Assembly: GCA_010909165.1 (NCBI GenBank)
Contig: MU008164.1
Location: 124,001 to 188,000, forward strand
Source: Anthoceros angustus
Taxonomy: Eukaryota; Plantae; Anthocerotophyta
Direction of reading: 5' to 3'
Length of the DNA stretch: 64,000 nt
Position 1 is the first letter of the stretch. The number at the start of each line of letters is the position of its first letter. Both the position numbers and the translations under genes were made by a program. The notes beneath the pieces were generated by a model. It had not been told where the DNA came from. It did no database searches and saw nothing but the letters and a program-made list of their open reading frames with translations. Positions 1,996-64,000 of the stretch are shown here, one piece after another.

Positions 1996-4033
1996 CGCCT
2001 GTAGCGCGGCGGATGTTAGAGCGGATGCCGACGCAGGCATGTGCCGAGCGCGGCTCCGACGCAGGTGATGGTCTAGATGGATCGTGTGTGGTGGCCGGGC
2101 GGCGCGCCGATGCCTGGAGTATGGGCACATGCGCCGGCGGTGCAGGGCGGCAGGCGGGCATTGGGGAGCAAGCAGGCGGGAGCGGAGGAGCGGTGCCTTC
2201 GCCGTTCTTCCCAACGGAATCGTCCTCCGTTCGGTGGTCCCCGAACCACCGTATCTCCGCGTGCCGTTCTCGGGCAATTACAGATATTTTGGCTAATACA
2301 CATGATGGAAATACCCCAAATTATTCAGAAGAGCATTTAGCCGATGATTTTATTAATGCTGCTATTTCTGATTTTGCTGACACCACTTCGGAAATGACTA
2401 GGGCTCTTCATGTGCATGCTCTTTTGACGGTTGACAATGAACCGGCTACCTATCAAGAGGCACTGAATGGGCCCAATGGTGCAGCATGGAAAGTCGCAAT
2501 AGAAAGTGAGTATAATTCTTTGATTAAAAATCACACTTGGGATTTAGTCTCACTTCCTCCTGGTCGTAAACCCATCCTATGCAAGTGGGTATTTAAAACA
2601 AAATTAAATGCTGATGGCTCAATTGAACGTTATAAAGCACGACTTGTTGCTAAAGGTTATAGCCAGGTTGCCAGTGTAGATTATCAAGAGACTTTTTCGC
2701 CGGTAGTCAAGACCCAATCCTTGAGGGTACTCTTAGCCTTAGCTGCAGAGTTGAATTTAGAAATCCATCAAATGGATGTTTGCACTGCATTTTTATATGG
2801 GGAACTTAAGGAAGAAATATATATGCGGCAGCCCGAGGGCTATGAAGATGCCAATGCTGAGCTTGTTTGTAAGTTGCTTAAGTGCCTCTATGGCTTAAAA
2901 CAAAGTGCTCATATATGGTATTATAAATGTGATGGTCGTCTTAAATTTATTGGCTTTATTCAAAGCCATGCTGATAGTAATGTTTATTATCTTGCTGACG
3001 GTTCTGACTTTATCATTTTAGCCTTATATGTTGATGATGTATGTATGTTTGGCACTAGTATGACCCTCATCAATAGCGTTAAAGATATGTTACGGCTGAA
3101 TTTGAAATGAAGGATATTGGAGTTCTTCAATGGTGCCTTGGCATTGATTCTCCGTGATCGGCCTAATGGCCGGATTTTTATGCATCAACAGAAATATGTC
3201 AGGGAAATTTTAACCCGATTTAATATGCAATCTGCTCGGCTGTATCTACTCCGGGCGGTTGGTATTCGATTATCTCTGATGGACAATCCGATGCTCAGCG
3301 TGAGGATATGTTTACTATCCCTTATGCTGCATGTGTGGGTTGTCTTCTTTATTTGGCTAATTGGACTCGGCCTGATATTATGTATGCTGTTAACGCTGTT
3401 GCTCAATATCTTCAAAATCCTGGGCGGGTCCATTGGGTCGCCGTGAAGAGGATCTTGAGATACTTGAGTGGTACCTCCACATATGGCATTTGCTATACCT
3501 CCACCGGTCAAAATCACTTCAACCTCACTGGTTTTGTGGATGCCGACTGGGCCTCCGACGCTGATACACGAAAAAGCATTTCTGCCTATTGCTTTATGTT
3601 AGCTGGAGCTTCCATAAGTTGGCGGTGTAAGAAGCAAACTAGTCTAGCCTTGAGTTCAACAGATGCAGAATATAAAGCTCTTCAAAAGCGGTAAAAAGAG
3701 GCAGCTCACTTTTGAGTGATATTAAGCGTCCTCGTCTATGCCTACAACACTCAATTGTGACAATATGTCGGCCATCGCTTTAGTAGCTAATCCTCGTTAT
3801 CATGCTCGTACTAAGCATATTGGGCTATATCATCATTATATCCACGATGTTACTTCAAGAGGAGTGGTGATAGTTGCTTATATTAATCAAGAGAGAATCT
3901 GCCGATATATTTACTAAGTCACTTCCTACTTATAAACACAATAAGCATAGGGAAGGACTTGGCGTAGTTGGCGACATCATTGCACAAGCAACTAAGGAAG
4001 CAAAATGTACAACACACTAAGTTTTTCAAGCTT

Positions 4034-5715: not shown

Positions 5716-8700
5716 ACGAAATGATGGTAGTTCGGGCTACTGCTTAGCAACGTGGTGGCGAATTGGGGCCCTGAGCTCCCCATCGGAGCCTGCTCTCCAG
5801 CAACCAAACGAGCACGAACAAGCCTCCTCCAGTCCATGTCCGGCACTACGGGCGGCCTGGCTGGGTGGCATCACCACTGTGCTGCCCATCTCCTTGCTTC
5901 CTCTTACGGTCTTGAGGAGGAGACTGCGGGTTGTTGTTCCCGTTCTTGGAAGCCTCACACACATGACTCCAATCATGCATCCCCATCCCCATACCACACA
6001 CATCAACCTCCAACCTCCACAAACAAGCAAACAAACAACGCCATCACCAGAGCCCTTGGATCCTCATCACCACCGCAGTCACACCCGGCCGCAGACACCA
6101 AAGCCCGCCGAGGCGAGCGAAGCCCTTCGTCCGAGCCACGACATGCCTCAGAAACCACCTCTCCGAGCCCGGCCTCCTCACTTGACAACCCGTTATTCTC
6201 ACTCACTCGAACAAGCCCGGCCCATTACGAGACTAAAGAATCGCTATCAAAGGCGAAGTCGGAATCGAATGTCACTGCCATGAGCCGCCCTCCGGCTCAA
6301 CAGCGCCCCAATTCGCGCTCGCCTCCCGACCTCCTCCGAACCTCAACTCGCACCCAAGCCTCCACCGGCACCAACCATCACGTGCCTCGCTCACGTGATG
6401 GAGGCGATACCGAACCCCGCTCTCCACCGGGCTGGGCTAGCGCCAGGGCTATGGCACCCACGACACCAACCACGGCGGCGGCGGCGGCGGCGGCCACATC
6501 GCCCGCCCGATGTGGCTCTCTTGAAGCCAGTTGCCTAAGTCGACAGACAGACATTGGCACCCGCAAGCGACCCTCGCTGTGAGGGATGTGAAGAATCTAG
6601 GATGCACCACAGTTCGCTCCCGTCAGCCTTGGACCATGGCTCCCACACCCTCTATGCTCCATGCTCCATGCTCCATGCTCCACACCCAGCTCCCTCTTAC
6701 AGCCCACTGAGATTGAAGTGTGAAAGGCAGTTGGAGGTAGGAGGCTCCAGCGTATTGGGTGCACCGGCGTCCCTTGCGTGTGGCCTTGGAGATTACCGAT
6801 CAATAAAAAGTAAAAATGGAGTTTAGACTTGTGAAATGAAAGGGAGCCTTAAGTTGAGGGTGTGTGGGATGTGTGGGATGTGTGTGTGCGTGAGTGTGTC
6901 TCCTGAAAATTTTAACATAGGAGATGGTCTCCTGAAGATTCAAACATAGGAGATGGTCTCTGGAGATTCAAACATAGGAGATTGGTTTGCTAACATTATG
7001 GTGAAATAAAAAATTTTACACACGAACTAGATGCTACTCTCTACAAGCAGCCATTGCTATTCCACTCATAATGTACAATGCACATTAGTCCTGTATGTAA
7101 CATTCCAATTTCTGGACAACATATGGTGTACACTTAAACACTTCATGAAATACAGCATATGCTACTGAAAACTCTTATGCTGACAAATACTTATCACTGA
7201 TCGCATGAGCAATCTTCTCAGCGCTTGTTCTATGCACTATGCCCTTTGAATATGTTGAGCGAAAAAGGTTTTCAAGCGTCCACCTCCGGTGTACGATTCA
7301 ACCCGGTGTTCTTGCAAGCGCAATTACTATCGGTGATGTTGTACTTGTCACTGACCCGGGCCGACCAAAGGAGAAAAGCTATGATCCGGATATACACGAA
7401 ATGACTGGTAGTTCGGGCTACCTGTTTAGCAACGTGGGTGGCAGCAATTGGGGCCCTGAGCTCCCCATCGGAGCCTGCTCTCCAGCAACCAAACGAGCAC
7501 GAACAAGCCTCCTCCAGTCCATGTCCGGCACTACGGGCGGCCTGGCTGGGTGGCATCACCACTGTGCTGCCCATCTCCTTGCTTCCTCTTACGGTCTTGA
7601 GGAGGTTGTTGTTCCCGTTCTTGGAAGCCTCACACATGACTCCAATCATGCATCCCCATCCCCATACCACACACATCAACCTCCAACCTCCACAAACAAG
7701 CAAACAAACAACGCCATCACGAGCCCTTGGATCCTGCATCACCGGCATCACACCCGGTCGCACACCAAAGCCCGCTCGAGGCGGGCCGAAGCCCTTCGTC
7801 CGAGCCCGACATGCCTCGAAACCACCTCTCCGAGCCCGGCCTCCTCGCCTTGACAACCCGTTATTCTCACTCACTCGAACAAGCCCGGCCCATTACGAGA
7901 CTAAAGAATCGCTATCAAAGGCGAAGTCGGAATCAGTCTGCACTGCGAGCTTTGCCCTCCGGCTCAACAGCGCCCCAATTCCGCGCTCGCTCCCTCACCT
8001 CCTCCGAACCTCAACTCGCTGACCTCCACTGGCACCAACCATCACGTGCCTCGCTCACGTGATGGAGGCGATCCACCCGCTCTCCCCTGCACCGCAGGCT
8101 GGCAGCCAGCCCCCTATGGCGACACCAACCACGGCGGGCGGCGGCGGCGGCGGCGTCACATCGCCCGCCCCTGTGGCTCTCTTGAAGCCGATTGCCTAAG
8201 TCGGCAGGCAGACATTGGCCCTGGCGCGAGGATGTGAAGAATCTAGGATGCACCAGTTCGCTCCGTCGACCTTGGACCATGGCTCCCACACCCTCTATGC
8301 TCCATGCTCCATGCTCCATGCTCCACACCCAGCTCCCTCTTACAGCCCACTGAGATTGAAGTGTGAAAGGCAGTTGGAGGTAGGAGGCTCCAGCGTATTG
8401 GGTGCACCGGCGTCCCTTGCGTGTGGCCTTGGAGATTACCGATCAATAAAAGGTTTAGACTTGTGAAATGAAAGGAGCCTTAAGTTGAGGGTGTGTGGGA
8501 TGTGTGGGATTCAAACATAGCGTGGTGTGTCTCTGAAAATTTTAACATAGGAGATGGTCTCAAGATTCAAACATAGGAGATGGTCTCTGGAGATTCAAAC
8601 ATAGGAGATTGGTTTGCTAACATTATGGTGAAATAAAATTTTACACATGAACTAGATGCTACTCTACAAGCATTGCTATTCCACTCATAATGTACAATGC

Positions 8701-11207: not shown

Positions 11208-11780
11208 TACCTGAGCTGGGGAGACAACCGTGGGTCACTGCCTTGTACATCCTGCGTTGCTCCTCTTGAACCATATTAATGAATTGTCTCGACCCTGCTC
11301 TAACTATCGCGTGTGCGGGCAGCTACCGAGAGCCTTTGATTTTGCCCATAGCCCCTTGGGAGAAGCTGCGTGCAGCTGCAGCCAAGCGCGAGAATTTGCA
11401 GCTAGATTTGGGGGTTACGGTGATCACTTGGCTGTGGTTGCTGCCAGAACAGCTGGTAGGGTGCTCAGCAGCAGTTCTGTTCAGAGAATTTTGTTTGAGG
11501 TGGAACTACGGCTATATATGCTGTCTCGTATGCAGACGCAGCTTCAACGGGACCTTGCTCAAAAGGGGTTCAGGTATGTCACGTTTGCAGTTTGAATGCA
11601 GGGGATATCGATCCTGGATATCCATTGTGCGGGCTGTTATAGCCGCCGGCTTGTATCCAACGATTGGAACACTACTACCACCGGTGTCAGGAAATCAAAA
11701 ATCTCTGCTCTAAACGTCCTCATGCTGCTGCTGCTAGGGCAGTTGATTGGAACTCCAGCCATATATATGCATTTATATAA
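11208..11780 (+). pseudogene. DExH6/YTHDC2-like helicase fragment 2 (HA2 / post-HA2 region)
   Basis: Across frameshifts: LPELGDNRGSLP.HP, NCLDPALTIACAGSYREPLILPIAPWEKLRAAAAKRE, FGGYGDHLAVVAA, MLSRMQTQLQRDLAQKG, IVRAVIAAGLYPTIG. These match the DExH6 HA2 consensus I recall (LGSLPVHP...CLDPALTLACAADYK.PF.MP...AAAAK...GG.SDHLAVVAAF). Confidence 0.8.
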
Positions 11781-14024: not shown

Positions 14025-15271
14025 GGACAATAAGGTAGCAGCAGGTGAGATAATCCGCACCAGTCTCAATCCAGCACGTTTTGTGTGCCTGCTCACCAAC
14101 TTCAGGTCAGGCACCCTCCTGAGAGTGTCTCAACTGTAGTGACATAGGGTAACAAGCTGATGCTGCTGCCTGGCTGGTTGCATGCACAACCACAATCCTT
14201 TCCGGCCTTATTCCGGATTATCTTTGGAAGCCGTCCCTGAATTGCAAAACCCCGCATTCCAGCACCGGCAACACATTCGTGGCACTCCGGAAACCCCAAT
14301 CCACACCACATTCACTTCCTCTCTAATGCGCAGCGCACAAAATTGCTCATCCCGAGCAATCTCACCTCCAAGAGCGATGCAAACCGGTACCGCAGAAATG
14401 AGCCAATTCTGGAGCCACCGGTGCTCCAATTCTGCAAATCCAGCAAATCCTGTACGGAACGAGTGCGGGTGCAAGCCGGAGATAGATGTGCTTCAGTGCG
14501 AGACGTGGTGAAGGAGATCCCGGTGGAGATGCAGGCGGATGCAGGCAGAAGCGGTGATGCCAGGGGAGTTCCGTCAGGATGTAGGGCGGTGGATCTCTCG
14601 GCTGCAGGAGGAGCAAGGAGTGGGATCTCTATTTTCTTTATGGGGCAGTTGGGGACGCATTTCGCCGGGCTCGGGCAGGGGCCAACAACTGTGCGGGCCT
14701 CTGCCCGAATCTGTGGTGCCCAATTCTGGCATGGAGCACAGGCCCTGGACAGTGCCCGCTGTAGCTTCGCAGTATCCCTGTGTTTTCCCCTGATCTAACC
14801 AAGAAGTGGTTGGATGAAGGCTGGGCGCAGGGATTGCTGCAGGAGACTCGTCGAGCTTGACGACCTTGAACTGCCTGCACCGTGGGCGGAACGCGTGACG
14901 ACGCAACTGAGATGGTGTCTGTGACAACCCTCATTTCCAAGCCTCGGAAACGTCTCGATCATATGAGAGGTCCTATGTACATTCGGTCCTCTGGTGAGAA
15001 TGAAAGCAGGAATAAAACTACGACAATACAAAAAGAAAAATGAGCCGCAGCACATGTGTAGTTGTAGAGTGCAGACATATATACATGCACAGACACAAGC
15101 CGGTTTCTAACTCTTAAGCTTCCTCGCCCACTTCGTCCTTAGGGTATTCCAAATGGAGAGCCTCACACCAATCCAGATATCAGGTTCGGAGTCCCATAGC
15201 CAGCTTGTTTCGTTGAATCTCCAGGGTTCCTAGTGGCCAGTGGAGTAGGTTTCAGGAGTCTCTGCAGGTGC

Positions 15272-16942
15272 CTATGGTTCCGCAGGCAGAGGCTGCAGAG
15301 CAACAGTCTTGTCCATAAACAGCATAGCATCGTATCTGTTGGCCAAGGATGTTGGCACATAATTCATTATCCAGTCCTGACCAGGTTTATACACCACTGC
15401 TATGGCTCTATGGCCTCGCATCGCCGCCAAACATCCTTCCTGGTGCTTGGGCTCGAACAAGAAGGCCACATGCTCTGCCTCCATTTTCAGAGCCACCTCA
15501 TGGAAGTCTGCTTCCCAGCACACACCCGTACTCGGAGGCACCTGCAAGATCTCCCCGGGACCATCCCAGGTCTGCGACGCAAACACGGTGCCCCGGAAAG
15601 TGCTGAACCCTACCAGCTTCACAGCCTCCACTCCGAGCTCCTCCCTGGCCAATCCCCCTAGATTGACATACCCGTCACGACCCATGGTGGTTGCCCTATA
15701 GTCCCCGACATGCGTGTTGTGCGCCCAGACAATCCCCTTCGACTGCGGCCCGTAGTGATCCAGCAGATCCCTGAGCGTCTCCATCATATGGCGGTCGCGA
15801 ACGTTCCAATACTTGCCCCCCAGTCTCTGAATCATGCAACGGTAATAGCTTTCCGCGCTCTTCACAATGCGAGCATTTTGTAGTGCGTCCAAGAAGGCAG
15901 TAGGCTCGATGCTGTTGAGCCGCTTGTGCAACAACTCCTGAAACGTGTCCTCCACTCCCTCATCGCAGCCCTGTGGATGCAAGCGTAGCGACCTGGCGTA
16001 GTCCCACTCGTTCTTCAGATAAGGATCGAAACACTCGTACCTAAGCTTCGCCTTCCTGGCTAGGGCTGGATCAATCCGCTCCATCTCCGTCACTGCATCC
16101 TTGATCGACTCCGACAGGGAGAAAATATCCAAGCCGTGAAATCCAACCCGCTTCTCAGGACTGTCTACCTCGGTATTCCGTATCCACATCCATGTCACCA
16201 GCTTCTGTAACTCCGTATTGCAATACATCCATGTCGGCCACCTCCTGCATTTGTCCAACAGCCGCTTTCAAGATTAACCTCCCAGAGACATCCTGTGCGC
16301 GTCTCGTTCATCTCATCAAATTCAGCGACTCCAAATCCACAGATCTACAAGGAAACAAAACTCGCAAAAGACACAAACATACTTGAAAGAACGAAGGACA
16401 TCGCCGACTCTGCTATTGTTACAGAGGTCGGGATCTTGATCCAGCTGCTGCTTGATGAAGCGGTTTACGCGTTGCGACGGAGGCCAATCCCCTTCAATAG
16501 CGATGAAGTTGAATCCGTGCTTCTCCATAAGTTCCTGTGAGATCAAACGACGCCACTCGTAGAATTCATGCGTGCCATGAGACGCCTCTCCCAGCATCAC
16601 CACTTTGGCGCTCTTCAACTGATTGACCAAGTCGCTGAGGTCTGCCACCGATTTGAACGATTTAGCCACGCCGCACAATGCCTTCACAAAGTTGGAGTCC
16701 TCTTGGGCTTCGCTCACAACAGCAACCGGAATCTTCTGGTGCTTTCCTCCAAGCCTAAGATGAGTGGGATGTCGGATCCGCTGCCGCCAGGAACAATCGA
16801 AATTCAGCATGCAGACTGCAGCTGGCTTTCTCACATAAGATGGAGTACCTGCATAGCACCGAGGCAAGTCACTCCGCTCTGGCCCCCTCTTTTGCAAGGA
16901 CAGCGATATGCAGGACGACGACATTTCGACTGCACCCGCCAT
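15272..16942 (-). CDS. Erythromycin esterase family protein (EreA/EreB-like fold) with N-terminal extension; 2 exons, ~510 aa
   Basis: Exon 1 16942-16383, intron GTATGT...ATGCAG (16382-16245), exon 2 16244-15272, giving ...VLRSFK|RWPTWMYCN. Motifs: VMLGEASHGTHEFY, FIAIEGDWP, GFHGLDIFSL, WNVRDRHM, IVWAHNTHVGD, RAIAVVYKP...NYVPTSLANRYDAMLF. Confidence 0.9.
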
Positions 16943-18247
16943 CAAGAATCACAACCAACAAACTCTGATGCATCTTGCTTATGCACGCTCCTATACATAT
17001 AATAGGATTACCTTGTTAAACTAGTTTTATTTATATCGGATCATAAATAAAGGATCTATTTTTCATATACATATTTTTAAATATTATTGAAATTTTATAT
17101 CATTGTAAGAACATATTATTTAGTTAGATAGGTATATTAACAACAAAATATAGACCACAAAAGAGAACAATAGCCAATATGGGACCTGCAATCATAAAGA
17201 AACATCCTGGGGGCTAGTCCCCCTGGCATGGTGCCCTTCGTTGGTTTTTCCCTTTTGTTTTTGGGGTGGATGGGTTTCTCCATCTCTTTTTTATAATAAA
17301 GTCTTCTTTCCGTCTTTAAGAAACATCTTATAATGAAGTTTAGAAATTGTATTGCTGAAACTTGATGTGCTATATTGATGAAAGCCATGAAGCAAGGGAA
17401 ATATGGTCTTTTGTAAACTACATTGTGAACTAGGTATTTTACCTAGTCTTTAGATTTTGATTAACTTTGGTAGTCTCATGCATAATAAGTCGTTTAACAG
17501 AGTCTAGCATGCCAACCCTAGAACGATATAAAATATTTGCAATCAAATTGTGAGTGGTTCTAGCCTTGGATATTGCCTCTCTTCTCAATCTCATCCTGTG
17601 CCATGGCCTGGCTGTGAGGACGATCCATGGATTGCAACTCATGATGCCATTAGAGGCTCACCTCGTGAGAAAAAATATACTAATAATAATAATAATAATA
17701 ATATTCATTAAAAAGACAGGGCAGGACCCGTGCACACGTCCGATCATCTCCCTTACATATATTGCATGGAGAATGGATTACAAATAGATGATTGGATAGT
17801 GTCATGCCGTGTGATACTAATCTCTGTGCACTTGGGTGTAGTGTTTGATTAGCATTAATTAGTCTAATTACTTATCTTTAAGTAAGTAATTAATGTTAAT
17901 TAATCTAAGGTGCTTATGTTAATTAAGCATTGATTAGTGTTAATTAAACATGGTTAGCAATAGCTAAGTGCATAAGCTCAAATATGCTTTAGCATATTGC
18001 ATATTATAGTGTATTCTTAGGATATTTGGCATATGCCAATAGGATATCTTAGGAATATGCGATGCAGGCTAGTATATATAGACCCTTCCATGAGGACAAG
18101 CTCGGATCATGCTTGTCTCTCTCTAATGCAAGGGTGTTGTGAGGAGGCCAAAGCTATGACTCCGAGAGCGATGTGTGAGAGCGATATGCCTCCGAGAGCG
18201 ATGTGCCTCGGAGATTTGTTGGAGATTTGAATGATTTAGCTACGCGG

Positions 18248-18530
18248 CACAATTCCTTCACAAAGTTGGAGAGAGATTGGATCCTGTTGGCGGGCACAGT
18301 TCCTTCACAAAGTTGGAGACATACTGGATCCTGTTGGCGGGCACAGCTCCTTCACAAAGTTGGAGACATACTGGATTCTATGGGTAGGGACAATTCCTTC
18401 ACAAACTTGGAGAGAGACGAGATCGGCCCACACGCAATATGGAACACAAACTAGATTTTGTGGGTAGGGACAGTTCCTTCACAAACTTGGAGAGAGACGG
18501 GATCGTGTGGGCAGGCAATATGGAACAACT
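18248..18530. repeat. ~47 bp minisatellite x5
   Basis: Core (C)ACARTTCCTTCACAAASTTGGAGA at 18248, 18295, 18342, ~18390 and ~18470. Confidence 0.8.
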
Positions 18531-18689
18531 TGGTGAGGAAGTGGAATTTGGTAGGGAATAAGAAGGATGTGGGAAATTCTATCTCCCTTTGAGTTTCATC
18601 ATACCACTATCTTTCTTCTCATATTCATTTGGTTTAGAGTTACAAGTTTCGTACACAAAAGAAATTGAAATTACCAACTTTGTTGATTC

Positions 18690-18835
18690 TCTTTGACTTA
18701 ATCCTTTTATAGTTGATTTGATTTTGACTTGATCCTTTTATCATTGATTTGCTTTTTACTTAATCCTTTTATCATTGATTTAATTTTCACTTAATCCTTT
18801 TATCATTGATTTATTTTTTTCTTAATCCTTTTGTG
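18690..18835. repeat. AT-rich ~28-30 bp minisatellite x5
   Basis: Repeated ACTTAATCCTTTTATCATTGATTT. Confidence 0.75.
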
Positions 18836-19200
18836 ATAAGATTCAAAAATAACTGGATGATCATTGGCCAACAACATTAATTTTTTTGTTTTTAATAGGA
18901 TTTTTGTCTAGTCTTTTTAAGCGAGTTTAGACTAAGAATACAAGACATATCCATCAAAGATTTTTTTACAAAATGATAATCTTTTTGTGATAAGATTTTG
19001 TATTTTAAAATACCCATAAGTTTTTTGAGGTTCGAAATGAGTTTTTACTTTCATACAAGCTATGTTTTCTCCACTTCTCTGTGCCAACTAAAATGTTGGA
19101 CACAAAAAGAAGGGAACACAAAAATAATTCCTAAGCCACTACTAGTTATCAACCCAATCTCCTACTGAAAAGCCATTTTGTTATCACACTTGGATCCGTA

Positions 19201-22200
19201 AGATGAGCCATTATAAGTCTTATGGTATCTAGAGCCAATTGTTCTTGCTCAGTCCATTGGGTCCTGTCTTCTTTCAAATGTAATCGTGATTCTAGGGTTT
19301 TGTAGAATTCTTATGTATGCTGTTTTGTAGAATTCTTGTGTATGCTGTTTTGTAGAATTCTTGTGTATGATGTTTTGTAGAATTCTTGTGTATGCTGTTT
19401 TGTAGAATTCTTATGTATGTTGTTTCTTGATACTTGTATACTTCGGAGAAAGTTTGAGCAAACGGCCAAGGCTTTTATGATCAGGTCTTGGATTAGAAAC
19501 AATAAGATGCACCCACTTTTCCCAATGATGGTACCTAGTCTCATTGTCATGTATCTGCACTCTTTCCATATTCGCTATTCAACTTGCTAGTGCTTGAATT
19601 GAGTTCTCAAAAAATAGTTGTTAAGAACTTCTTTACAATAGAACATGCAGACATCGTTAAGAACTTCCTTACAATGGAACATATAGACATCGTAGTCTCA
19701 GAGGCTCTTATATCGTGAAGTTCAACAATCCTAAATAGGAACCTACTATCCTCGGAACCTCCATCTTAGAATAGTATAATGTATATGTGTGAATACCACA
19801 TATATATACAATACTATAATATGCAAATATCTATGCAATATGCAAAAGTAATTCCATATGGTATGCAAAAGGTCAAGTATGGATGAGTAATTCTAGGCAG
19901 GCATAAAACATAAAGAAAATCTTCGATGGTATGCAAAAGATTTGTTTTGAATCTTCTACAACTATTTCCCTTCGATTCTTTAGCAATACTTCTAATAATT
20001 CTCAAATACGCGTGCAACATATATAAACCTTAGTTGCTATGAATTTGGATTATTTGAACAGAAACTGGACATATAAAGTACACAAATCATACAAACAAAA
20101 AGGTGAAGACATATAAATTTTGGAGATATAATTATTTTATAATATAATAATTATAATCCATCGGACTTAAATATCAGGGTTCCCATGACCGATGGTACAT
20201 GCGTGAGAAAGAGAAGAGGATTTTTTTTTATAGATGGCTAATGATGGATGACTATCATAATTTTTATCTTTAACTGTGGCCCCGATGACAGATGTTCAAG
20301 AAAGTGAAGAGGAATTATGTTTTTTTAAGTTGATTAATAATGGATAATTATGTTCATCATAATTATCTATCTATCACCATCAGGCAAAGGAAAATATGAT
20401 GCCCTCCAAGGATGCTTTTAACCACCCTTAGATAAGAAACCACAGTGCCCTCTAAGCATGCTATCAACCTGTCCTTAGATAAGAAACCACCCCTCTAAGC
20501 ATGCTATTAACCACCCTTAGATAAGAAACCACCATACCTCTAAGGGTGCTAGTTTTGTAGATGCTTATAATGTATTTGTATAACTCATCACAATAGAAGA
20601 TTAATACTAAAATAAAAGTTATTACACAATTAAAAGACATGTATAGTTGTTAATTGCTCAAATATCTCTTTGAGCATCTCCATTAATCACTCCCAAGCTT
20701 TTTTATGATAGTAAAATTCGTGAAAGATCGGCTCACACAATACTAGAAATACTAGTGTCCAATGGGTTCCAAACCATAATGTCTCCTAAGATGACTGGTA
20801 ATTGAAAGCAAAACACTTATATGTAGTGCTTAGCAACATTTTTAAGTATCCATACAAATGAATTATACTAAGCCACATATAAGCAACCTTATCTCATTGT
20901 TATCACCCTGATTCATAAGATGAGCCATTATAAGTCTTGTTCTTACAAGAGCCACTTCTTCTTTCTTAGTCCATTGGGTCCCGTCTTCTTTCAAATGTAG
21001 TTTGACTCTAGGCTTGTGTAAAATTCTTGTGTATGTTGTTTCTTGATATTGAAAGTATGCTTGAGAAAGTTTGAGCAAACGGCCAAGGCTTTTATGATCG
21101 GTCTTGGATTAGAAACAATAAGATGCACCCACTTTTCCCAATGATGGTACCTAGTCTCATTGTCATGTATCCGCACTCTTTCCATATTCGCTATTCAACT
21201 TGCTAGTGCTTGAATTGAGTTCTCAAAAATAGTTGTTAAGAACTTCTTTACAATAGAACATGCGAACATCGTTAAGAACTTCCTTACAATGGAACATATA
21301 GACATCGTAGTCTCGAGGCTCTTATATCGTGAAGTTCAACAATCCTAAATAGAACCTACTATCCTGAACCTCCATCTTAGAATAGTATAATGTATATGTG
21401 TGAATACCACATATATATACAATACTATAATATGCAAATATCTATGCAATATGCAAAAGTAATTCCATATGGTATGCAAAAGGTCAAGTATGGATGAGTA
21501 ATTCTAGACAGAACGCAAAACATAAAGAAAATCTTACTGATGGTATGCAAAAGATTTGTTTTGAATCTTCTACAACTATTTCCCTTCGATTCTTTAGCAA
21601 TACTTCTAATAATTCTCAAATACGCGTGCAACATATATAAACCTTAGTTGCTATGAATTTGGATTATTTGAACAGAAACTGGACATATAAAGTACACAAA
21701 TCATACAAACAAAAAGGTGAAGACATATAAATTTTGGAGATATAATTATTTTATAATATAATAATTATAATCCATCGGACTTAAATATCGTGGTTCCCAT
21801 GACCTGGCGTGAGAAAGAGAAGAGGATTTTTTTATAGATGGCTAATGATGGATGACTATCATAATTTTTATCTTTAATCGTGGCCCCGATGACGGATGTT
21901 CAAGAAAGTGAAGAGGAATTATGTTTTTAAGTTGATTAATAATGGATAATTATGTTCATCATAATTATCTATCTATCACCATCAGGCAAAGGAAAATATG
22001 ATGCCCTCCAAGGATGCTTTTAACCACCCTTAGATAAGAAACCACAGTGCCCTCTAAGCATGCTATCAACCTGTCCTTAGATAAGAAACCACCGTGCCCT
22101 CTAAGCATGCTATTAACCACCCTTAGATAAGAAACCACCATACCCTCTAAGGGTGCTAGTTTTTGTAGATGCTTATAAATGTATTTGTATAACTCATCAC

Positions 22201-24150
22201 AATAGAAGATTAATACTAAAATAAAAGTTATTACACAATTAAAAGACATGTATAGTTGTTAATTGCTCAAATATCTCTTTGAGCATCTCCATTAATCACT
22301 CCCAAGCTTTTTTATGATAGTAAAATTCGTGAAAGATCGGCTCACACAATACTAGAAATACTAGTGTCCAATGGGTTCCAAACCATAATGTCTCCTAAGA
22401 TGACTGGTAATTGAAAGCAAAACACTTATATGTAGTGCTTAGCAACATTTTTAAGTATCCATACAAATGAATTATACTAAGCCACATATAAGCAACCTTA
22501 TCTCATTGTTATCACCCTCGGATTCATAAGATGAGCCATTATAAGTCTTGTTCTTACAAGAGCCACTTCTTCTTTCTTAGTCCATTGGGTCCCGTCTTCT
22601 TTCAAATGTAGTTTGACTCTAGGCTTGTGTAAAATTCTTGTGTATGTTGTTTCTTGATATTGAAAGTATGCTTCCGAGAAAGTTTGAGCAAATGGCGAAG
22701 TGTTTGTGATCAGGTCTTGGATTCTCAAATCGCTGCATGCAACATATATAAACCTTAGTTGCTATGAATTTGGATTATTTGAACAGAAACTGGACATATA
22801 AAGTACACAAATCATACAAACAAAAAGGTGAAGACATATAAATTTTGGAGATATAATTATTTTATAATATAATAATTATAATCCATCGGACTTAAATATC
22901 AGGGTTCCCATGACCGATGGTACATGCGTGAGAAAGAGAAGAGGATTTTTTTTTATAGATGGCTAATGATGGATGACTATCATAATTTTTATCTTTAATC
23001 GTGGCCCCGATGATGTATGTTCAAGAAAGTGAAGAGGAATTATGTTTTTAAGTTGATTAATAATGGATAATTATGTTCATCATAATTATCTATCTATCAC
23101 CATCAGGCAAAGGAAAATATGATGCCCTCCAAGGATGCTTTTAACCACCCTTAGATAAGAAACCACAGTGCCCTCTAAGCATGCTATCAACCTGTCCTTA
23201 GATAAGAAACCACCGTGCCCTCTAAGCATGCTATTAACCACCCTTAGATAAGAAACCACCATACCCTCTAAGGGTGCTAGTTTTTGTAGATGCTTATAAA
23301 TGTATTTGTATAACTCATCACAATAGAAGATTAATACTAAAATAAAAGTTATTACACAATTAAAAGACATGTATAGTTGTTAATTGCTCAAATATCTCTT
23401 TGAGCATCTCCATTAATCACTCCCAAGCTTTTTTATGATAGTAAAATTCCCGTAAAGATCGGCTCACACAATACTAGAAATACTAGTGTCCAATGGGTTC
23501 CAAACCATAATGTCTCCTAAGACAGACCTGGGTAATTGAAAGCAAAACACTTATATGTAGTGCTTAGCAACATTTTTAAGTATCCATACAAATGAATTAT
23601 ACTAAGCCACATATAAGCAACCTTATCTGCTGTTGTTATCACCCTCGGATTCATAAGATGAGCCATTATAAGTCTTGTTCTTACAAGAGCCACTTCTTCT
23701 TTCTTAGTCCATTGGGTCCCGTCTTCTTTCAAATGTAGTCGTGACTCTAGGCTTGTGTAAAATTCTTGTGTATGTTGTTTCTTGATATTGAAAGTATGCT
23801 TCCGAGAAAGTTTGAGCAAATGGCGAAGTGTTTGTGATCAGGTCTTGGATTCTCAGCAATAAGATGCAACCACTTTTCCTAATGACGCTACATAGTCTCA
23901 TTGTCATGTATGTGCACTTTTTTCCATATTCGCTGTCCAACTTTGCTAGTGCTTTAGCAAGTTAGAAGTGAGTTCTCAAAACATTAGTTGTTAAGAACTT
24001 CCTAAGAATAAGACATGTAGACATCTTAGTCTTAGAGGTCTTTAGATAGTGAAATACAACAACCCTTCCTAGGAACCTACTACCCTCATAACCTATATTT
24101 TAGAGAGGGGATGGATTTTTCCCATCTCTTTTTTATAATAAAGTCTTCTT
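19201..24150. repeat. AT-rich tandem array of a ~1.1-1.7 kb unit (3 copies plus a partial fourth)
   Basis: Anchor AGATGAGCCATTATAAGTCTT at ~19201, 20918, 22529 and 23658. Copy 3 has an internal deletion near 22725. Internal subrepeat CCTTAGATAAGAAACCAC occurs x3 per unit. A 25-bp repeat x5 (19298-19420) is found only in copy 1. Confidence 0.9.
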
Positions 24151-34924: not shown

Positions 34925-36916
34925 TCAGTCGGGCAAGATAGGGAGTCGGCTGACGCTGGTTCCTCCCGTGCTTGAGAGTTGTTTGCCATCTTCCTCACCT
35001 TCCAGAGCAGGCACAGCAGAGAGCGCGGCTGGAGCAGCAGAAGAGTGGGAAGGGAGAATCCTGAGGCGGAGCTTGGCATCACTCCCAGCCTTCTCCGTGG
35101 CCAGCTGATAGCCTTCCGCCAGCTTCTCCTGCAAGCCGATAACATCAATGCTCCTGGGAAGCAGCTCCACCGGCTGACCCCTGGGAATCACGATCCGCTC
35201 TATGGCCTGCCGCGCTTCCTCCAGCGCATCTATCCTCTCCTCCGACGTGCTACTGCTACCCCGCTCCCTGCTCTGCTCCGCGTCCCTCTCCCTCAGTGCA
35301 TCCGACGACACCCACGCGTTGCTCACCAGCGACTCCATCCCCAGAATTGCCCGCAACGCCCTCACCATCTGCGCCATAGTGTTGGCCTTGATGGCGAAGA
35401 TTGGAAGCTGCCGGAACTTGGCCATTCCCCGCACCCAGGAGTTCTGCTTCAACTTGCTCCTCAGCGCCAGCACGGCGTCCGCGGCCCCGATGTCGTCCGT
35501 CAGCTGCACGGCCTTCTCCAGCCCCATCACCTCCATCACCTGCTCCAACGCCGCCTCCGTCACCTGGTACGCAAAGAGCTTCAGAGGCGGGTCGCCTAAA
35601 CCCCAACCCTTGCCGCCATCTCCCGCCACATAGTCCTCCTCCTCCGAGCTCTCCTCATCGCTCTCACCATCGCTGCTGGTGCATCCATCCTGTGAAGCTT
35701 GGCCTTCCATGGAAGCAGAAGAGGCGATCACCTGTCCCGCATCCGTCATCCTTCGCACCTCCACCAGCGGAGTGCGCCCCGCGAGAAGAGCGTCCACAGT
35801 GGCCGCCAGGCTTCGGTGCACGCGCCACTCGCTCCTGGACACCATCTCCACCGCGGCCGTGAAGGTCGGCGGGCCCATCCGCTCCAGCACGCTCTTCTGC
35901 ACTCCCCGCCTTCGAGCCTCCTCGTCCCCGAGCGTCACGCTCTGGATCCCCCCCGCCAAGCTCTGCAGGGACGGATTCTTGATGAGGTTATCCACAGTCA
36001 TGCCGTGCGCGGTGGCCACCAGCTGCACTCCCCGCTGGGCGATGGTCCCCGCTGCAGCAGCCTCCCGCTCCGTCCCGATCTCATCAATCACGATAGTCTG
36101 CGGCATGTGATTCTCCACGGCCTCGATCATCACATGGTGCTGCATCTCCACCCTCGCCACCTGCATCCTCCTGGCCCTCCCGATCCCGGGATGCGCGATG
36201 TCCCCGTCCCCACCGATCTCGTTCGAGGTGTCCACCACCACGACGCGCCTGGCGTACTCGTCCGCCAGCACCCGCGCCACCTCCCGGATGGCCGTGGTCT
36301 TCCCGACCCCGGGCGGGCCCATAAGCAGCAGCGAGCCTCCCCCGGCCACCAGATCTCGCACCATCTCCGCGCTCCCCGAGATGGCCCGCCCCACCCGGCA
36401 TGTGAGCCCGACGATCTTCCCTCCTCTGTTCCGGATCGCGCTCACCCGGTGCAGCGTCCTGTCGATCCCCGCCCGGTTGTCCTCCGCGAAATCCCCGACC
36501 ACGGCCACGGCTCTCGCCAAATCCTCTGCCGACACCGCCTGCTCCGAAATCGGCCAATCCCCGGACGGGAATCTGGCCACCGGCCGCCTCCCAAGGTCCA
36601 GCACGATCTCCACCAGTCCCTGGATCTCCTCATGCTGCACCAGGCTCTCCCGCAGCGGCTCCGCCACCAGCGCCACCAGCTGCTGCAGCTCCCCTTCCAA
36701 TGCGCCTTCTTGCTCTAGCCCTTGCCCTTGCCCTTGCCCCAGCCGCCTCGTCGTCACGCTCTGCCCTCCACCATGGCCACACCACCCGGTCACGTGCCGG
36801 AGCAGGCTCACGTGCTCTACGTTCCACCTCCCGCGTCCGCCATAGCCACAATCTCGAGCTCGGGTCGTGAACCCGACGCGGACGCCCACGCGCGGGGCCA
36901 CGACCAGGCAATTCAT
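34925..36916 (-). CDS. ycf45: ycf45-like / SpoIIIAA-type P-loop ATPase (SPD1 family), intronless, probably plastid-targeted
   Basis: 663-aa ORF with EIVLDLGRRP, GLTCRVGRA, Walker A GPPGVGKT, VVDTSNEIGGDGD, VENHMPQTIVIDEIG, ATAHG and IQSVTLGDEEA. Confidence 0.9.
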   Translation of the reverse strand: MNCLVVAPRVGVRVGFTTRARDCGYGGRGRWNVEHVSLLRHVTGWCGHGGGQSVTTRRLGQGQGQGLEQEGALEGELQQLVALVAEPLRESLVQHEEIQGLVEIVLDLGRRPVARFPSGDWPISEQAVSAEDLARAVAVVGDFAEDNRAGIDRTLHRVSAIRNRGGKIVGLTCRVGRAISGSAEMVRDLVAGGGSLLLMGPPGVGKTTAIREVARVLADEYARRVVVVDTSNEIGGDGDIAHPGIGRARRMQVARVEMQHHVMIEAVENHMPQTIVIDEIGTEREAAAAGTIAQRGVQLVATAHGMTVDNLIKNPSLQSLAGGIQSVTLGDEEARRRGVQKSVLERMGPPTFTAAVEMVSRSEWRVHRSLAATVDALLAGRTPLVEVRRMTDAGQVIASSASMEGQASQDGCTSSDGESDEESSEEEDYVAGDGGKGWGLGDPPLKLFAYQVTEAALEQVMEVMGLEKAVQLTDDIGAADAVLALRSKLKQNSWVRGMAKFRQLPIFAIKANTMAQMVRALRAILGMESLVSNAWVSSDALRERDAEQSRERGSSSTSEERIDALEEARQAIERIVIPRGQPVELLPRSIDVIGLQEKLAEGYQLATEKAGSDAKLRLRILPSHSSAAPAALSAVPALEGEEDGKQLSSTGGTSVSRLPILPD

Positions 36917-37640: not shown

Positions 37641-38208
37641 ACCATCTGCTACTTGGTGCACGAAGCTCGCAGCCTTTCTGTCCTTTCAGATTGTGTGCTG
37701 CTGCTGTTGCTGCTGCGCAACTGTTCGTCGAGGAGGTCGACAGCATCTCTGTTTCCGCCTCGCCTGTCTTTGGTGAGCGTCTAGACTGCCCGGTCTGTGT
37801 GTGCCGATGTTGGGCGTGGCAGGGTTTGGATGTTCCTAGAAGGTTCTGCATTTTGTTAGGGATGGTTTGTTGTCGCGTTCGGAGGGACGGTGGGGTGAGG
37901 TTTTGTAGCCCTCGTTGTATTCATTTGTACGTGTGTGGTGGAGAGTCTGGTGGGCTGGGTGCCGGGATCGCTGTCCTTTGCTTGAAGGTGAGTGTTGTGG
38001 TGGCGGCGGGAGTTGGCATCGTGGATGATGGTGGCGAGCTCATGTGGACTCTGTTGTTGATCGGTGATGGTGTTGAGTGGATGCAGGCTTGGCGCTGAGG
38101 GGGTTGCCTCCTTCAATATATTTGTTGGAGTGTGTTGTTGGAGACATCAGCGTGGCGCCAATAACGGGCAGGGAGGTTGGCGTCCGAGCGCTGCTCTGGG
38201 TCAGAGCC

Positions 38209-40833
38209 ATGGCTGGAGCCACCACCCTCACTCCTTCCGCCTCTCTGCAGCTGCAAGGGCTATGTCTGGAGACCTCCAAGAGGGCTGTGGCGTCTCGGGC
38301 CAGTGCCGCCGGCTGGCCCAGCCCGGCCCTGTCGCTCTCCTCGTCCTCGTCCTCTTGTTTCGGTGGCGAGGCTGGGAAGGTGGGCCTGAGCGTTTCCAGG
38401 CCCGTCTTTCTGATGCCCGGGCAGAAATGTCCGGACGTGCTGAAGTCTGCCGTGTGTTTTCAGAGGGACGGGCTGTTGAAGGGGCTTGAGGATTTCGACT
38501 CCTCCTCCTTCGCTGTCAAGGGGTCCAGGGGGGTTCACACGCAGGGGGCTTACCAGTCGTCGGCAGTGGTATCTGCGGAGTACCTGGTGGCGGAGGAGGA
38601 GCAGACAAGTGTGAGGGACGGCAGGTACAGCAGCGCCTCTAGTGGTCTCTTTTCCTATGATGTCAGAAGTGAGGCTGTGGGAACCACGGAAACTTCGGAT
38701 GCCAGGGATCCGCTAGCTATTGCCAACCTGGGCATTTCCGACATCATCGTGAAGGCTTTGTCCGCCCGTGGTATTGAGAAGTTGTTTCCTATTCAGAGCG
38801 CGGTGCTGGAGCCCGCCATGCGGGGCAAGGACCTGATTGGCCGGGCCAAGACGGGGACCGGGAAGACACTCGCTTTTGGGATACCGATTCTCCACAAAAT
38901 TACCGAGGAGAATGAGCAGAACAGACTTGCCAAGAGGATGGGCCGTACTCCTCGGGCTCTTGTGTTGGCCCCAACCCGAGAGCTTGCGAAGCAGGTAGAG
39001 AGGGAGTTTAAGGAATCAGCTCCGCACCTGAGCACGTGCTGTGTTTACGGAGGTGTGTCCATCATAGAGCAGAAGAGATCTCTTGACCGAGGCGTCGACA
39101 TTGTTGTTGGTACCCCTGGTCGAGTGATAGACCTGCTTAATCAGGGTAACCTGAAGCTGCAAGACTGCCGCTTTATTGTTCTGGATGAAGCAGATCAGAT
39201 GCTTGCTGTCGGTTTTGCGGAGGACGTGGAAAGGATCTTAGAGTCTGCGCCAACAGTGAGGCAAAGTATGTTGTTTTCTGCCACCATGCCTGCATGGGTC
39301 CTGAAGTTATCCCGGCGGTATTTGAAGGAGCCTACGACCATCGATCTGGTGGGGGACAACGACGAGAAGCTTGCAGAGGGCATCAAAATCAAGGCTGTCG
39401 GTGTTGGTGGAACCATGAAGAGGACTGTCTTGAATGACCTTATCACAGTGTATGGGAAAGGTGGAAAAACTATTGTGTTCACCCAGACCAAGCGGGACGC
39501 TGATGAGGTTGCCATGGTCATGAGTCGGATATTGGGTTGTGAGGCCCTTCATGGTGATATCTCTCAGCACCAGCGCGAGAAGACTCTGAATGGGTTCCGC
39601 TCAGGAATATTTTCTGTGCTGGTCGCCACGGACGTGGCTGCTCGAGGTCTGGATATCCCCAACGTTGATCTGGTCATTCACTATGAAGCACCCAATGACT
39701 CTGAGACCTTTGTCCATCGCACGGGAAGGACAGGAAGGGCTGGGAAAACGGGCACTGCCATTCTCATGTATGCAAGCCAACAGCAAAGGACTCTGCGGAC
39801 CATAGAGCATGATGTGGGATGCAAGTTTGAGTACATCGCACCTCCAACTTTGTACGAGGTTCTGAGGTCATCCGCCGACCAAGCTGAAGATCAAATCAGG
39901 AAAGTGCACCCTGAACTGAAGACTGTCTTCCTGGAGACTGCGGAGAAACTTCTGGCAGAGCAGGGTTCTGGAGCTCTAGCAGCTGCCATTGCACACATGA
40001 GCGGCTACACGCAACCTCCTGCACCTCGCTCTTTGATCACCCATGAAGAAGGGAAAGTGACCCTGCGTCTCATCCGTACTGGACGACCCATTCGCAGTCT
40101 CATCAATGCCCGAGCTGTCACAGGCGCTGTGTCCAGCATCTTCCCTGAGGCGGCATACCAAATGGGTAAAATCCGTGTGATCTCAGAACCTGATGTGGAC
40201 GGTGCAGTCTTTGATGTGCCAGAGGAGCTGGCTAAGGAATTCCTGTCGAAGCCGACTGCAGCTGGCGAGACTGTGGACATGCCCAAGGTGCTACCCAGGC
40301 TGGAGGATGACGAAGAGGACCTGAGATCTCGTGACTTTGGAAGGTTCTCAAGGGACGGGGGTAGAGGGGGCTCTAGAAGCCGGGGTGGCTATGGGGGTTC
40401 GAGCGGTGGCTATGGGGGTTCAAGTGGCGGTTATGGGGGTGGTGGCTATGGGCAGAGGAGTGGTGGCTATGGATCTTCTAGCGGTGGCTATGGATCTTCT
40501 AGCGGCGGCTACGGATCGTCTAGCGGTGGCTATGGGTCTGCTAGCGGTGGCTATGGGTCTGCTAGCGGAGGCTATGGATCTGCTAGCGGTGGCTATGGGT
40601 CTGGGAGTGGGAGTGGTGGGTATGGGTCGGGGTCCGGGAGTTCTGGCTATGGGTATGGGAGTGGGTCTGGGACTGCAAGGTCTGATGGTATGCTTAGGAG
40701 AGGAGGTGGAGAATCCTATGGCGGCAGCAGTGGAGGTGCTAGCAGGGGTGGCTCTTTCGGCGGTGCTTGCTATTTATGTGGGCAGCCTGGTCACCGTGCC
40801 TCTGACTGCCCTTCAGGTGGTAGCAGGCGGTGA
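38209..40833 (+). CDS. RH3: Plastid DEAD-box RNA helicase 3 (DDX21-like; GUCT domain and C-terminal CCHC zinc knuckle), intronless, 874 aa
   Basis: First ATG at 38209 (MAGATTL...). [55 protein letters not shown]; GAVFDVPEE (GUCT); [14 protein letters not shown]. Confidence 0.95.
40383..40673 (+). repeat. In-frame ~21-nt repeat encoding a GGYGSSS low-complexity tract in RH3
   Basis: [14 protein letters not shown] x3, GGYGSAS x3 and variants; 14 YG dipeptides. Confidence 0.9.
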
Positions 40834-56627: not shown

Positions 56628-57139
56628 GGGAGGCGTCCGGGGTCCAATTCATGAACCCCAGAAATAGGCCGGACGATGCCCGTCTTCACCTTGGTCCCTG
56701 ATGTGGCTTGCCTTATCTGAAGTTCATCCTGCTGAACAGGCAAGATGATGGTGGTGGAGAAGATCTGCACCTTGCTGCCATTGCTGACTACTCGGAGAAC
56801 CCGCCTGTTGGCATTTGCGGATGTCAAAGCTGGACAGATCTATCAGCTGGTGTTCACTACCAGCCATGGAAGCTCGTAAGCTCAACACCTTGCTATCAAA
56901 CAACACCAAGATGCACAAAGATCTGCAGAGGATTCTAAACCTCCTATCCCAAGCAAACATCCAACAAAACACCGGACAAACAACCTGCGTACAAGCCTCC
57001 GATCAGCACCAACAATGTGGGGAAATATGGGAGGAAAGTCCATCGCCCGGATTGTGACGAGGACTGGCTATCCGCTTTGATTTTGTTGTCTTCCATTTAT
57101 CACGATCGAACCTGTTCGTGGGCGCCTTGGAAGCGGGGC

Positions 57140-60100: not shown

Positions 60101-60259
60101 ACACCTTTGCTAGTCACTAAGAACCTTCGAATGTGCAACGACTGCCACAGCAGCACCAAGATCATGTCACGCCTTGAACAGCGAGAGATTATAGTTCGAG
60201 ATGCACACCGAGTGCACCGTTTCCTGGATGGATTCTGTTCATGTGGGGATAGGCATTGA
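57140..60259 (+). CDS. PLS-class PPR-E-DYW:KP (DRH-type) protein with an N-terminal OSB-type PDF motif, 1039 aa
   Basis: First ATG at 57140. LWHQFFVDPRQWWDNRVDKPSPRHPDFRHK...LWLN...PEWV at 57329-57469; 20 PPRs; KKAAKVCIEV, GHAEKLA, CNDCH, CSCGDRH. Confidence 0.95.
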   Translation: MAMALAELLLCPLPLSKLGQQQQQQPSCGFSHTGKRRCVPSETGVCRAYTRQALGAAEAGEERLWHQFFVDPRQWWDNRVDKPSPRHPDFRHKVSRQVLWLNSRLKPEWVDLLLAKWDAGPGAGDGERKAMVERLIRRCENGKLSEAVEALDVLVQWRCRVPDSVLYRLLKRCSGEKDLVLGRKVHSIARNGGYESDAFVATHILGMYAAHGKLGDAVQVFGKVEVPNAYMWSSIILAHARLGRPAEAIAFYRQMRESGVKPDNHIFVAVLKACASATDLVAGKEVHADILGSDVKSNSFVGSSLVNMYAKCGSLEEARTVFDALGTKTVVTWNAMIAGYAQQGLREEVFHLYDRMQLDGLQVNKVTFVCLLQSCASLEALHQGKQLHKEIRQRELDADLLVGNCLVDMYSKCGSVEDARRVFDRLPTRDVVTWTAMIGGYASQGMAQEALSLYASMQQESMILGDRVTYVCLLKACASIGVLHQGRQLHMQIELEGLAADVVIGNCLVDMYSKCGSVGDARQVFDSLPTKDVVTWNAMIAGYSQRGLGKEALDLYERMQLMGLTPADHITFLCLLQACASVGALHQGKQLHAQIRDRGLEADVSVCSSLVGMYAKCGSLEDARALFSKLPTRDVVTWNAMIAGFTQQGLGREALALYASMQQEGTTPNHLTFVSLLQACASVGAVHYGRELHAEIQEQGLEANVMVGNCLVDMYSKCGSLEEARRAVDRLPVRDVVTWSALLNGYAEHGDGQKAKQCFDEMCQQGVEPNESTFVSLLVACSHAGLVDEGQRYFKMMVEDHGIVPTDDHYNCMVDLLGRSGHLDEAESFLQTKPFQNRVVGWTSLLSACKNHGDAERGRRCFEHLTELEPGNASAYVLLGTIYANAGRWEDVGTIERLRKSARAWKKAAKVCIEVQNKVHEFTVGEERADISSKLRSVNTRLKEQGGHVPQTQLVLRAVSEQEKEDALCGHAEKLALAYGLLNTPDGTPLLVTKNLRMCNDCHSSTKIMSRLEQREIIVRDAHRVHRFLDGFCSCGDRH

Positions 60260-63027: not shown

Positions 63028-64000
63028 TCATTGCCGGTCGTTGCAAGAGCATGAACCGCATGAGAATCGGTGTACTCGGTTTGCGTCTCTAACTATAATT
63101 TCGCGCTTCTCGAGACGTGAGGTTATCTTGATGCTACTGTGGCAGTAGTTGCACATGCGAAGGTTTTTGGTGACCAACAAAGTGGTGCCATCGGGGGTGT
63201 TGAGAAGACCAAAGGCTATGGCCAGTCTTTCTGCGTGTCCACAGACGACATCTTCCTTCTCACGCTCGCGCATGGGCTTCAGACCCAGCTGTGTCCGTGG
63301 GATATGGCCTCCTTCGTCCACCAACCTGGTACTCACGCTCGACAACATGCCAGACGAGACGTCAGATTTCTCCTCTCCTACTATGAACTCGTGCACCTTG
63401 TTCTTCACTTCGATGCATGCCCTGGCTGGCTTCTTCCAAGCAAGTGCAGACCTTCTCAGACTCTCGGTTTGCTCCACATCCTCCCACCGGCCAGCTTTTG
63501 CGTAGATGTTGCCCAAGAGGATATAGGCCGATGCTTTCTTAGGTACCATTTTCACGATGCGGTCGAAGCATCTTCTTCCTCGACCTGCATCATTGTGGGT
63601 TTTGCAGGCACTGAGCAGCGATGTCCAGCCCACGACGTTATCATGGAGCGGCATAGTGTGCAGCACCTGTTCTGCCTCATCCAGACAGCCTGCCCGTCCA
63701 AGGAGGTCCACCAGACAGTTGTAGTGATGGTCGGTGGGCTCAATGCCATGCGCTTTTACCATCCTGAAAAACTGCCAGCCCTCATCCACCAGCCCTGCAT
63801 GACTGCATGCCACAAGCAGACTGATGAAAGTGCTACCATCAGGCTCCACGCCTTCCTGCTGCATCTCTACGAAACACTGCCTTGCCCTCTCCATATCGCC
63901 ATTTTCAGCATACCCACTAAGGAGAGCATTCCATGTCACAAGGCTCTTGACAGGCATTCTGTCGAACACTCCGCGAGCCTCCTCCAAGCTCGCACATTTC
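63028..64000 (-). CDS. PPR-E-DYW:KP protein, 5' part beyond the window end
   Basis: P2-L2-S2-E1-E2, KKPARACIEV, GHAERLA, LRMCNYCH, C-terminal CSCNDRQ. Confidence 0.93.
   Translation of the reverse strand, partial: KCASLEEARGVFDRMPVKSLVTWNALLSGYAENGDMERARQCFVEMQQEGVEPDGSTFISLLVACSHAGLVDEGWQFFRMVKAHGIEPTDHHYNCLVDLLGRAGCLDEAEQVLHTMPLHDNVVGWTSLLSACKTHNDAGRGRRCFDRIVKMVPKKASAYILLGNIYAKAGRWEDVEQTESLRRSALAWKKPARACIEVKNKVHEFIVGEEKSDVSSGMLSSVSTRLVDEGGHIPRTQLGLKPMREREKEDVVCGHAERLAIAFGLLNTPDGTTLLVTKNLRMCNYCHSSIKITSRLEKREIIVRDANRVHRFSCGSCSCNDRQ

Follow-up and report, generated by a model that had tools for sequence, protein, structure and literature searches.

A bacterial-type erythromycin esterase family gene, probably of Bdellovibrionota origin, in the nuclear genome of the hornwort Anthoceros angustus

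Gene transfer from bacteria to bryophytes is well documented, and one more such event is in itself unsurprising. The transfers described for Anthoceros angustus by Zhang 2020 and those described by Dong 2025 are events of the kind considered here, in which a bacterial metabolic gene resides in a bryophyte nucleus and carries few introns; Dong 2025 counts 1,809 transferred families in streptophytes. The Ere (erythromycin esterase) family is not named in the main texts of Zhang 2020 and Dong 2025 or in those of their supplements that are readable, and the searchable supplementary files of the two Anthoceros genome papers contain no mention of "erythromycin" or of the Pfam names; one of these papers excluded transfer candidates without transcript support. 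The family may well be listed in the tables of Dong 2025, and no plant Ere family was named in the literature that we searched.

The described enzymes EreA/EreC and EreB/EreD belong to the same Pfam family as the hornwort protein analysed here. For EreC, a metal-free mechanism has been proposed in which H50, positioned by E47, takes a proton from water, E78 and H289 assist in holding the water, and R261 stabilizes the transition state (PMC7979712). The equivalents of E47, H50, E78, R261, and H289 are kept in the hornwort protein, whereas its NCBIfam scores lie far below the family cut-offs (EreB, NF000209, 19.6 bits versus 750; EreD, NF000516, 18.4 bits versus 800), and exon 2 searched against NCBIfam gave no match. 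Judged by these scores, the hornwort protein is not an EreA-D macrolide resistance enzyme. The closest solved structures by profile search are BcR135 and BcR136 of Bacillus cereus (PDB 2QGM and 2RAD/3B55), which have the GEA(S/T)HG and HNxH motifs in common with the hornwort protein but are distant kin, below the reach of a PDB search with exon 2 as a single sequence, which returned no structure at E 0.001. A profile built from 30 sequences of the subfamily reached BcR135/136 at E 1e-26 to 1e-27, while its match to EreC (6XCQ) was weak (E 4e-6) and limited to the N-terminal 73 residues of EreC. No biochemically characterized member of this Bdellovibrionota-like subfamily was found in the searched literature.

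Gene structure and catalytic residues

The gene lies in a 64,000-nucleotide stretch of A. angustus DNA, which we call the window. Its features, in the order in which the gene is read, are as follows.

16694..16942, minus strand: N-terminal extension, residues 1-83 (alignment, composition, and frame analysis)
16383..16942, minus strand: exon 1, the leader plus the start of the Ere domain with its motifs GEASHG and IEGDW (ORF list and splice reconstruction)
16574..16591, minus strand: GEASHG, residues 118-123; E119 and H122 correspond to EreC E47 and H50
16484..16498, minus strand: IEGDW, residues 149-153; E150 corresponds to EreC E78
16245..16382, minus strand: intron of 138 nt, GTATGT...TGCAG, GT-AG, phase 2, GC 0.45, containing an in-frame stop
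15272..16244, minus strand: exon 2, the remaining Ere domain through the TAG at 15274-15272 (Pfam PF05139)
15788..15805, minus strand: NVRDRH; R336 corresponds to EreC R261
15710..15727, minus strand: WAHNTH, residues 360-365; H362 corresponds to EreC H289
15230..15271, minus strand: relic of the ancestral C-terminal tail, 13 in-frame codons (APAETPETYSTGH) and a stop, behind the premature TAG

Two minus-strand ORFs, 16322-16945 and 15272-16258, are present in the ORF list. Exon 1 starts with the ATG at 16942 and closes with two bases of codon 187, and reading of the sequence places a splice, ttcaa/gtatgt...tgcag/gagg, that takes out 16382-16245 and leaves a frame of 510 codons from that ATG to the TAG at 15274-15272. 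Because the intron has an in-frame stop inside it, it must be spliced out. The junction rebuilds ..LRSFK/RWPTWM.., a stretch that is gapless and nearly invariant in all homologues, and the alignment shows the intron to be a clean insertion, with zero homologous residues lost at the junction. The same site is uninterrupted in Sphagnum, in the genomic contig L086 (described below), and in all bacterial homologues. Thus the GT-AG intron restoring SFK/RWPTWM, which the original prediction had read from the DNA, was borne out both by the sequence and by the homologue alignment. The prediction had also called the ORF complete; the 510-codon spliced frame stands, but its completeness does not, since the TAG comes 13 codons ahead of where the ancestral frame stopped. 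Both exons are open, without frameshift or internal stop, and the splice sites are canonical, from which we infer that the gene is probably spliced and expressed. A search of RNA runs listed none that contains this stretch; the one run examined was nearly devoid of window sequence, its contigs being placed only at 17220-17300, outside the gene.

Family membership was assessed against Pfam PF05139 (Erythro_esteras), whose gathering cut-off of 26.4 bits is exceeded by both exons: exon 1 matches profile positions 2-33 with 28.8 bits (E 1.3e-6), and exon 2 matches positions 42-358 of 358 with 265 bits (E 1.8e-78). The predicted GEASHG, IEGDW, and WAHNTH motifs are present in the translated protein, and profile alignment to 6XCQ revealed that all five catalytic residues of EreC are kept (E119, H122, E150, R336, and H362). 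With these positions preserved, the same water-activating mechanism is plausible: the Glu/His/Glu/Arg/His set would activate water for attack on the ester carbonyl, as in EreC. Metal-independent hydrolysis of a small-molecule ester or lactone is most likely and our best mechanistic guess, and by this reasoning the hornwort protein would be catalytically competent.

Bacterial origin and relatives in other eukaryotes

In the window, genes of plant type lie on both sides of the Ere gene.

2013-3110: Copia reverse transcriptase
11279-11713: DEAH helicase exon
34925-36916, minus strand: AAA ATPase with a C-terminal PTPase-like domain, 663 codons, uninterrupted
38077-40833, plus strand: DEAD/Helicase_C/GUCT/zinc-knuckle helicase, 918-codon open frame, uninterrupted
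53979-56627, minus strand: PPR-DYW gene, intronless
57017-60259, plus strand: PPR-DYW gene, intronless
63028-63987, minus strand: PPR-DYW gene, intronless, running off the window end

The sharing of the contig with plant genes that had been noted earlier thus stands (Copia, DEAH, DEAD/GUCT, and the three PPR-DYW genes are all present), and it places the Ere gene in a plant chromosome rather than in contaminating DNA. The AAA/PTPase and DEAD/GUCT genes are arranged back to back where the GC content of the window is highest, and the PPR-DYW trio resembles tandem or inverted duplicates. Hornwort PPR proteins of the DRH class have been proposed to act in U-to-C RNA editing. In the three DYW domains here, KKPA(K/R)A replaces the PG box, and the C-termini are DRH, DRH, and DRQ; DYW:KP domains are limited to hornworts, lycophytes, and ferns, and DRH is described as a hornwort variant of the DYW:KP proteins (PMC9478123). 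By these features the window belongs to a hornwort genome.

A database search with exon 2 yielded 5,529 matches, of which the best was a Sphagnum protein cluster (61% identity) and the next was P0002, a protein of 449 residues (57% identity); the remaining matches are at most ~53% identical and, where named, are bacterial or metagenomic. Only Sphagnum, P0002, and fragments of L086 stood above the bacterial matches among the 5,529, most of which carry no taxon name. In the collection of 5.8 billion clusters, no protein is more than 61% identical to the hornwort Ere protein, which is itself absent. An exact look-up showed that two neighbouring intronless ORFs are absent from the collection as well, and so the hornwort genome's own annotation is not in it.

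The Sphagnum gene (S. magellanicum KAH9537736.1, CY35_16G067900; also in S. jensenii) is an orthologue, 61-64% identical, in the same clade as the hornwort gene (100/99; support values throughout are ultrafast bootstrap/SH-aLRT). The original prediction named no described land-plant family; the hornwort gene is not alone, as Sphagnum species carry an orthologue. The two have the same catalytic motifs, and GDWPPS is shared within the plant clade where bacteria have GDWPPC. In contrast to the hornwort gene, the Sphagnum gene (on an 18-Mb S. magellanicum chromosome) reads through the SFK/RW site without an intron, in an unbroken ORF of 458 codons; it is leaderless, its C-terminal tail is complete, and its rate of evolution is about half that of the hornwort gene. 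An intron near the 3' end is used by the annotated S. magellanicum model and by one JGI contig. The resulting spliced form (P0128, 462 aa, from L002 6001-7802, CM038922.1) skips 7273-7685, with unrelated residues replacing the tail, and the JGI contig L003 has this spliced form contiguously; the Sphagnum C-terminus may vary by alternative splicing.

P0002 is encoded on a transcript-like contig of 1.7 kb with ~190-nt untranslated flanks on each side. In a different sample, the genomic contig L086 (1.65 kb) has three exon blocks whose protein product shares 74-85% identity with P0002, and the contig is interrupted at 1178-1261 and ~1391-1511, whereas the related transcript-like contig L001 runs straight through both sites; neither interruption coincides with the position of the hornwort intron. 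A further relative, P0035, is encoded on another transcript-like contig (L004, JGI 3300013895). It has WEHNTH instead of WAHNTH and EGDFP instead of EGDWP, and at L004 1620-1741 the 3' flank ends in a ~45-nt direct repeat (..gatctcaagat.ta.cagtacaggacac..ttgtaaatatccggg). Three eukaryote lineages with three intron patterns point to independent gains after a shared acquisition. Intron gain after transfer, which had been proposed, accordingly fits both the Sphagnum orthologue, continuous at the hornwort site, and the third lineage, whose introns lie elsewhere.

Among prokaryotes scanned at one genome per species (571 relatives), the closest named ones are Bdellovibrio, Bacteriovorax, and other Bdellovibrionota, with 43-50% identity. 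These "erythromycin esterase family proteins" (Bdellovibrio, Bacteriovorax, Oligoflexia) are of the same length class as the hornwort protein and share its motifs; identity reaches ~53% for unnamed database proteins. They differ from the hornwort gene in being intronless, in rarely having a long leader, and in retaining the conserved ..PETWPxG. tail. Three trees, two of them quick (119 and 103 rows) and the third a careful one (49 rows), gave the same result. The window sequence, Sphagnum, and P0002 form one clade (100/99) with P0035 as its sister (99/98), and together they are nested in a larger clade supported at 100/99. All phylum-assigned rows of that larger clade are Bdellovibrionota, and its only other row with a title is a MAG labelled "uncultured proteobacterium", which is unclassified. 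Sequences from Actinomycetota, Bacteroidota, Gemmatimonadota, and other phyla do not belong to it. The nesting of the plant clade among Bdellovibrionota upholds the horizontal transfer from bacteria that had been suggested from the motifs.

Taken together, these results point to an old acquisition that would be common to the hornwort, Sphagnum, and at least one other eukaryote lineage, after which the hornwort lineage would have gained one spliceosomal intron and an N-terminal leader. The most parsimonious history is that an early bryophyte received the gene once, long ago, from a Bdellovibrionota-like donor and that losses came later; spread of the gene from plant to plant is a possible alternative route. 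We put the probability at about 0.7 that this is a nuclear hornwort gene for a PF05139 hydrolase that came from bacteria, most likely Bdellovibrionota, and that gained an intron and a leader and has come under relaxed or shifted constraint.

The leader, the lost tail, and the rate of evolution

Homology to other proteins begins near residue 84 in the alignment, and 83 residues precede it, in agreement with the N-terminal extension of about 80 residues that had been predicted. The leader begins with MA, has a Ser-rich start, and contains 12 Ser plus Thr residues and 12 Lys plus Arg residues versus 7 Asp plus Glu, a composition characteristic of transit peptides (Ser/Thr and basic residues, few acidic ones). 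Met codons occur in it at residues 1, 7, and 45 with none between 45 and 116; translation therefore starts at Met1, Met7, or Met45, and the number of extra residues is 38-83 depending on which is used. The single open frame across this stretch is that of the leader, for which base composition gives an estimated chance of ~0.04. GC by codon position is 0.57/0.52/0.57 in the leader versus 0.55/0.34-0.41/0.65-0.68 in the core. The leader is missing in Sphagnum, P0002, P0035, and most bacterial homologues, and a few bacterial homologues, e.g., P0007, have unrelated leaders of their own. A database search with exon 1 found no leader-bearing relative, the best match covering 58% of the query; one match, P0141/L085, proved to be a bacterial gene split by a frameshift and was set aside. 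The leader is possibly a young presequence, and its composition would be compatible with organelle targeting. The original proposal of such targeting was drawn entirely from this make-up, and it gains no support from a leader that has no homologue and a weak coding signal.

A short ORF of 34 codons (window 16871-16973, minus strand), in a different frame from the gene, starts with an ATG at 16973, upstream of the main ATG at 16942, and overlaps the latter. If the transcript begins upstream of 16973, initiation at Met1 could be reduced by this uORF, to the benefit of Met7 or Met45. A TATA-like AT-rich sequence lies at about 17030-17100. Directly upstream of the gene, window positions 17000-24000 are AT-rich (GC 0.33-0.36) and without an ORF of at least 130 aa, sitting between gene-like blocks of GC 0.45-0.60.

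At the other end of the protein, the codons behind the premature TAG still resemble the conserved bacterial tail, ..EIPETWPxGx, when the relic APAETPETYSTGH is compared with the alignment consensus. Since the tail is still readable, the nonsense change looks recent. We next compare the copy at near-invariant positions, defined as the 76 columns conserved at 97% or more in 194 bacterial sequences. Six of these 76 positions differ in the hornwort protein (W194Y, Y228F, L288F, S332Y, G469A, and the lost tail proline), versus one each for Sphagnum, P0002, and P0035 and a median of 0 (95th percentile, 3) for the bacterial rows. In Tajima relative-rate tests with six outgroups, 39-50 unique changes were counted in the hornwort versus 15-21 in Sphagnum (p 0.0005-0.006); the hornwort was also faster than P0002 in five of the six tests, and Sphagnum and P0002 were alike. 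In the careful tree, no member of the plant clade has a longer terminal branch than the hornwort sequence. The evolutionary rate of the hornwort copy is about double that of the Sphagnum gene.

Between hornwort and Sphagnum, dN is 0.29 and dS is saturated at ~2. The contrast between the two indicates purifying selection over most of the gene's history, with the proviso that dS between plant lineages is saturated throughout (~2 or undefined) and hence blind to recent relaxation. We hypothesize that the hornwort copy is under relaxed or shifted constraint, as the loss of the tail, the changes at near-invariant residues, and the raised rate would suggest; the copy is either on its way to being lost or undergoing a change of function.

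Alternative explanations and significance

Four other readings of the locus were weighed against a functional nuclear gene of bacterial origin. Contamination, or bacterial DNA joined chimerically to plant sequence in the assembly, might be suspected from the mostly bacterial distribution of the family, whose nearest named relatives here are soil and freshwater Bdellovibrionota. However, a GT-AG intron with an in-frame stop interrupts the coding sequence, the top match is a gene on an 18-Mb Sphagnum chromosome and not a bacterial one, identity to any bacterium is at most ~53%, and Copia, the DEAH exon, and hornwort-type PPR genes flank the locus on both sides within the same 64 kb, so that we regard this reading as extremely improbable and already close to refuted. 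An organelle-targeted macrolide esterase that shields plastid or mitochondrial ribosomes from microbial macrolides, as originally proposed, is very unlikely. The Ere catalytic set is intact, the leader is basic and Ser-rich, begins with MA, and has no counterpart in the compared homologues, and at least 38 residues stand ahead of the conserved core whether translation begins at Met 1, 7, or 45; yet macrolide hydrolysis sits poorly with scores of ~19 bits against EreB and EreD cut-offs of 750-800 and with a profile that fits BcR135/136 (1e-27) far better than EreC (4e-6), and targeting sits poorly with a leader that has neither a codon-position GC signal nor a homologue and with Sphagnum and P0002 orthologues that are leaderless.

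The two remaining readings concern the fate of the hornwort copy. It could be an early-stage pseudogene or silent duplicate, long functional but now silent or inactive and starting to decay. An in-frame TAG 13 codons short with the old tail still legible indicates a recent event, departures at 6 of 76 near-invariant positions exceed the bacterial 95th percentile of 3, unique substitutions are ~2x those of Sphagnum, and with nothing above 61% identity in the 5.8-billion-cluster collection, no assembled transcript of the hornwort gene or a close orthologue is present there. Set against this are 510 open codons with no frameshift or internal stop, canonical splice sites, the retention of all five catalytic residues, the conservative nature of the substitutions in conserved columns (W to Y, Y to F, L to F, and G to A), and the fact that loss of 13 C-terminal residues need not inactivate the enzyme; decay is thus a possible explanation, although on balance an unlikely one. 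Decidedly less probable is that a post-duplication copy with a new presequence is targeted to an organelle and is adapting to a new substrate, even though adaptation of this kind would explain the fast evolution, the altered conserved residues, and the trimmed tail. If true, it would be a compact case of a transferred bacterial gene that was retargeted and refunctionalized, readable in one genome.

Under the preferred reading of a nuclear hydrolase gene acquired from bacteria, the hornwort Ere gene is one more case of a known transfer phenomenon, in a family already present in Sphagnum. What is new here is the premature TAG with its legible tail, together with the near-invariant departures and the doubled rate, as well as a third eukaryote lineage that bears its own introns and the assignment of the window to a hornwort through its DRH-type PPR genes. 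The Ere family offers a clean, datable example of transfer in which the likely donors are predatory soil bacteria. The intron patterns are specific to each lineage: the hornwort has one intron, Sphagnum lacks an intron at that site, and the third lineage has two at other positions. The family is therefore useful for studying how introns enter a transferred gene and at which places. With its new leader, trimmed tail, and doubled rate, the hornwort copy could show the fate of a transferred enzyme.
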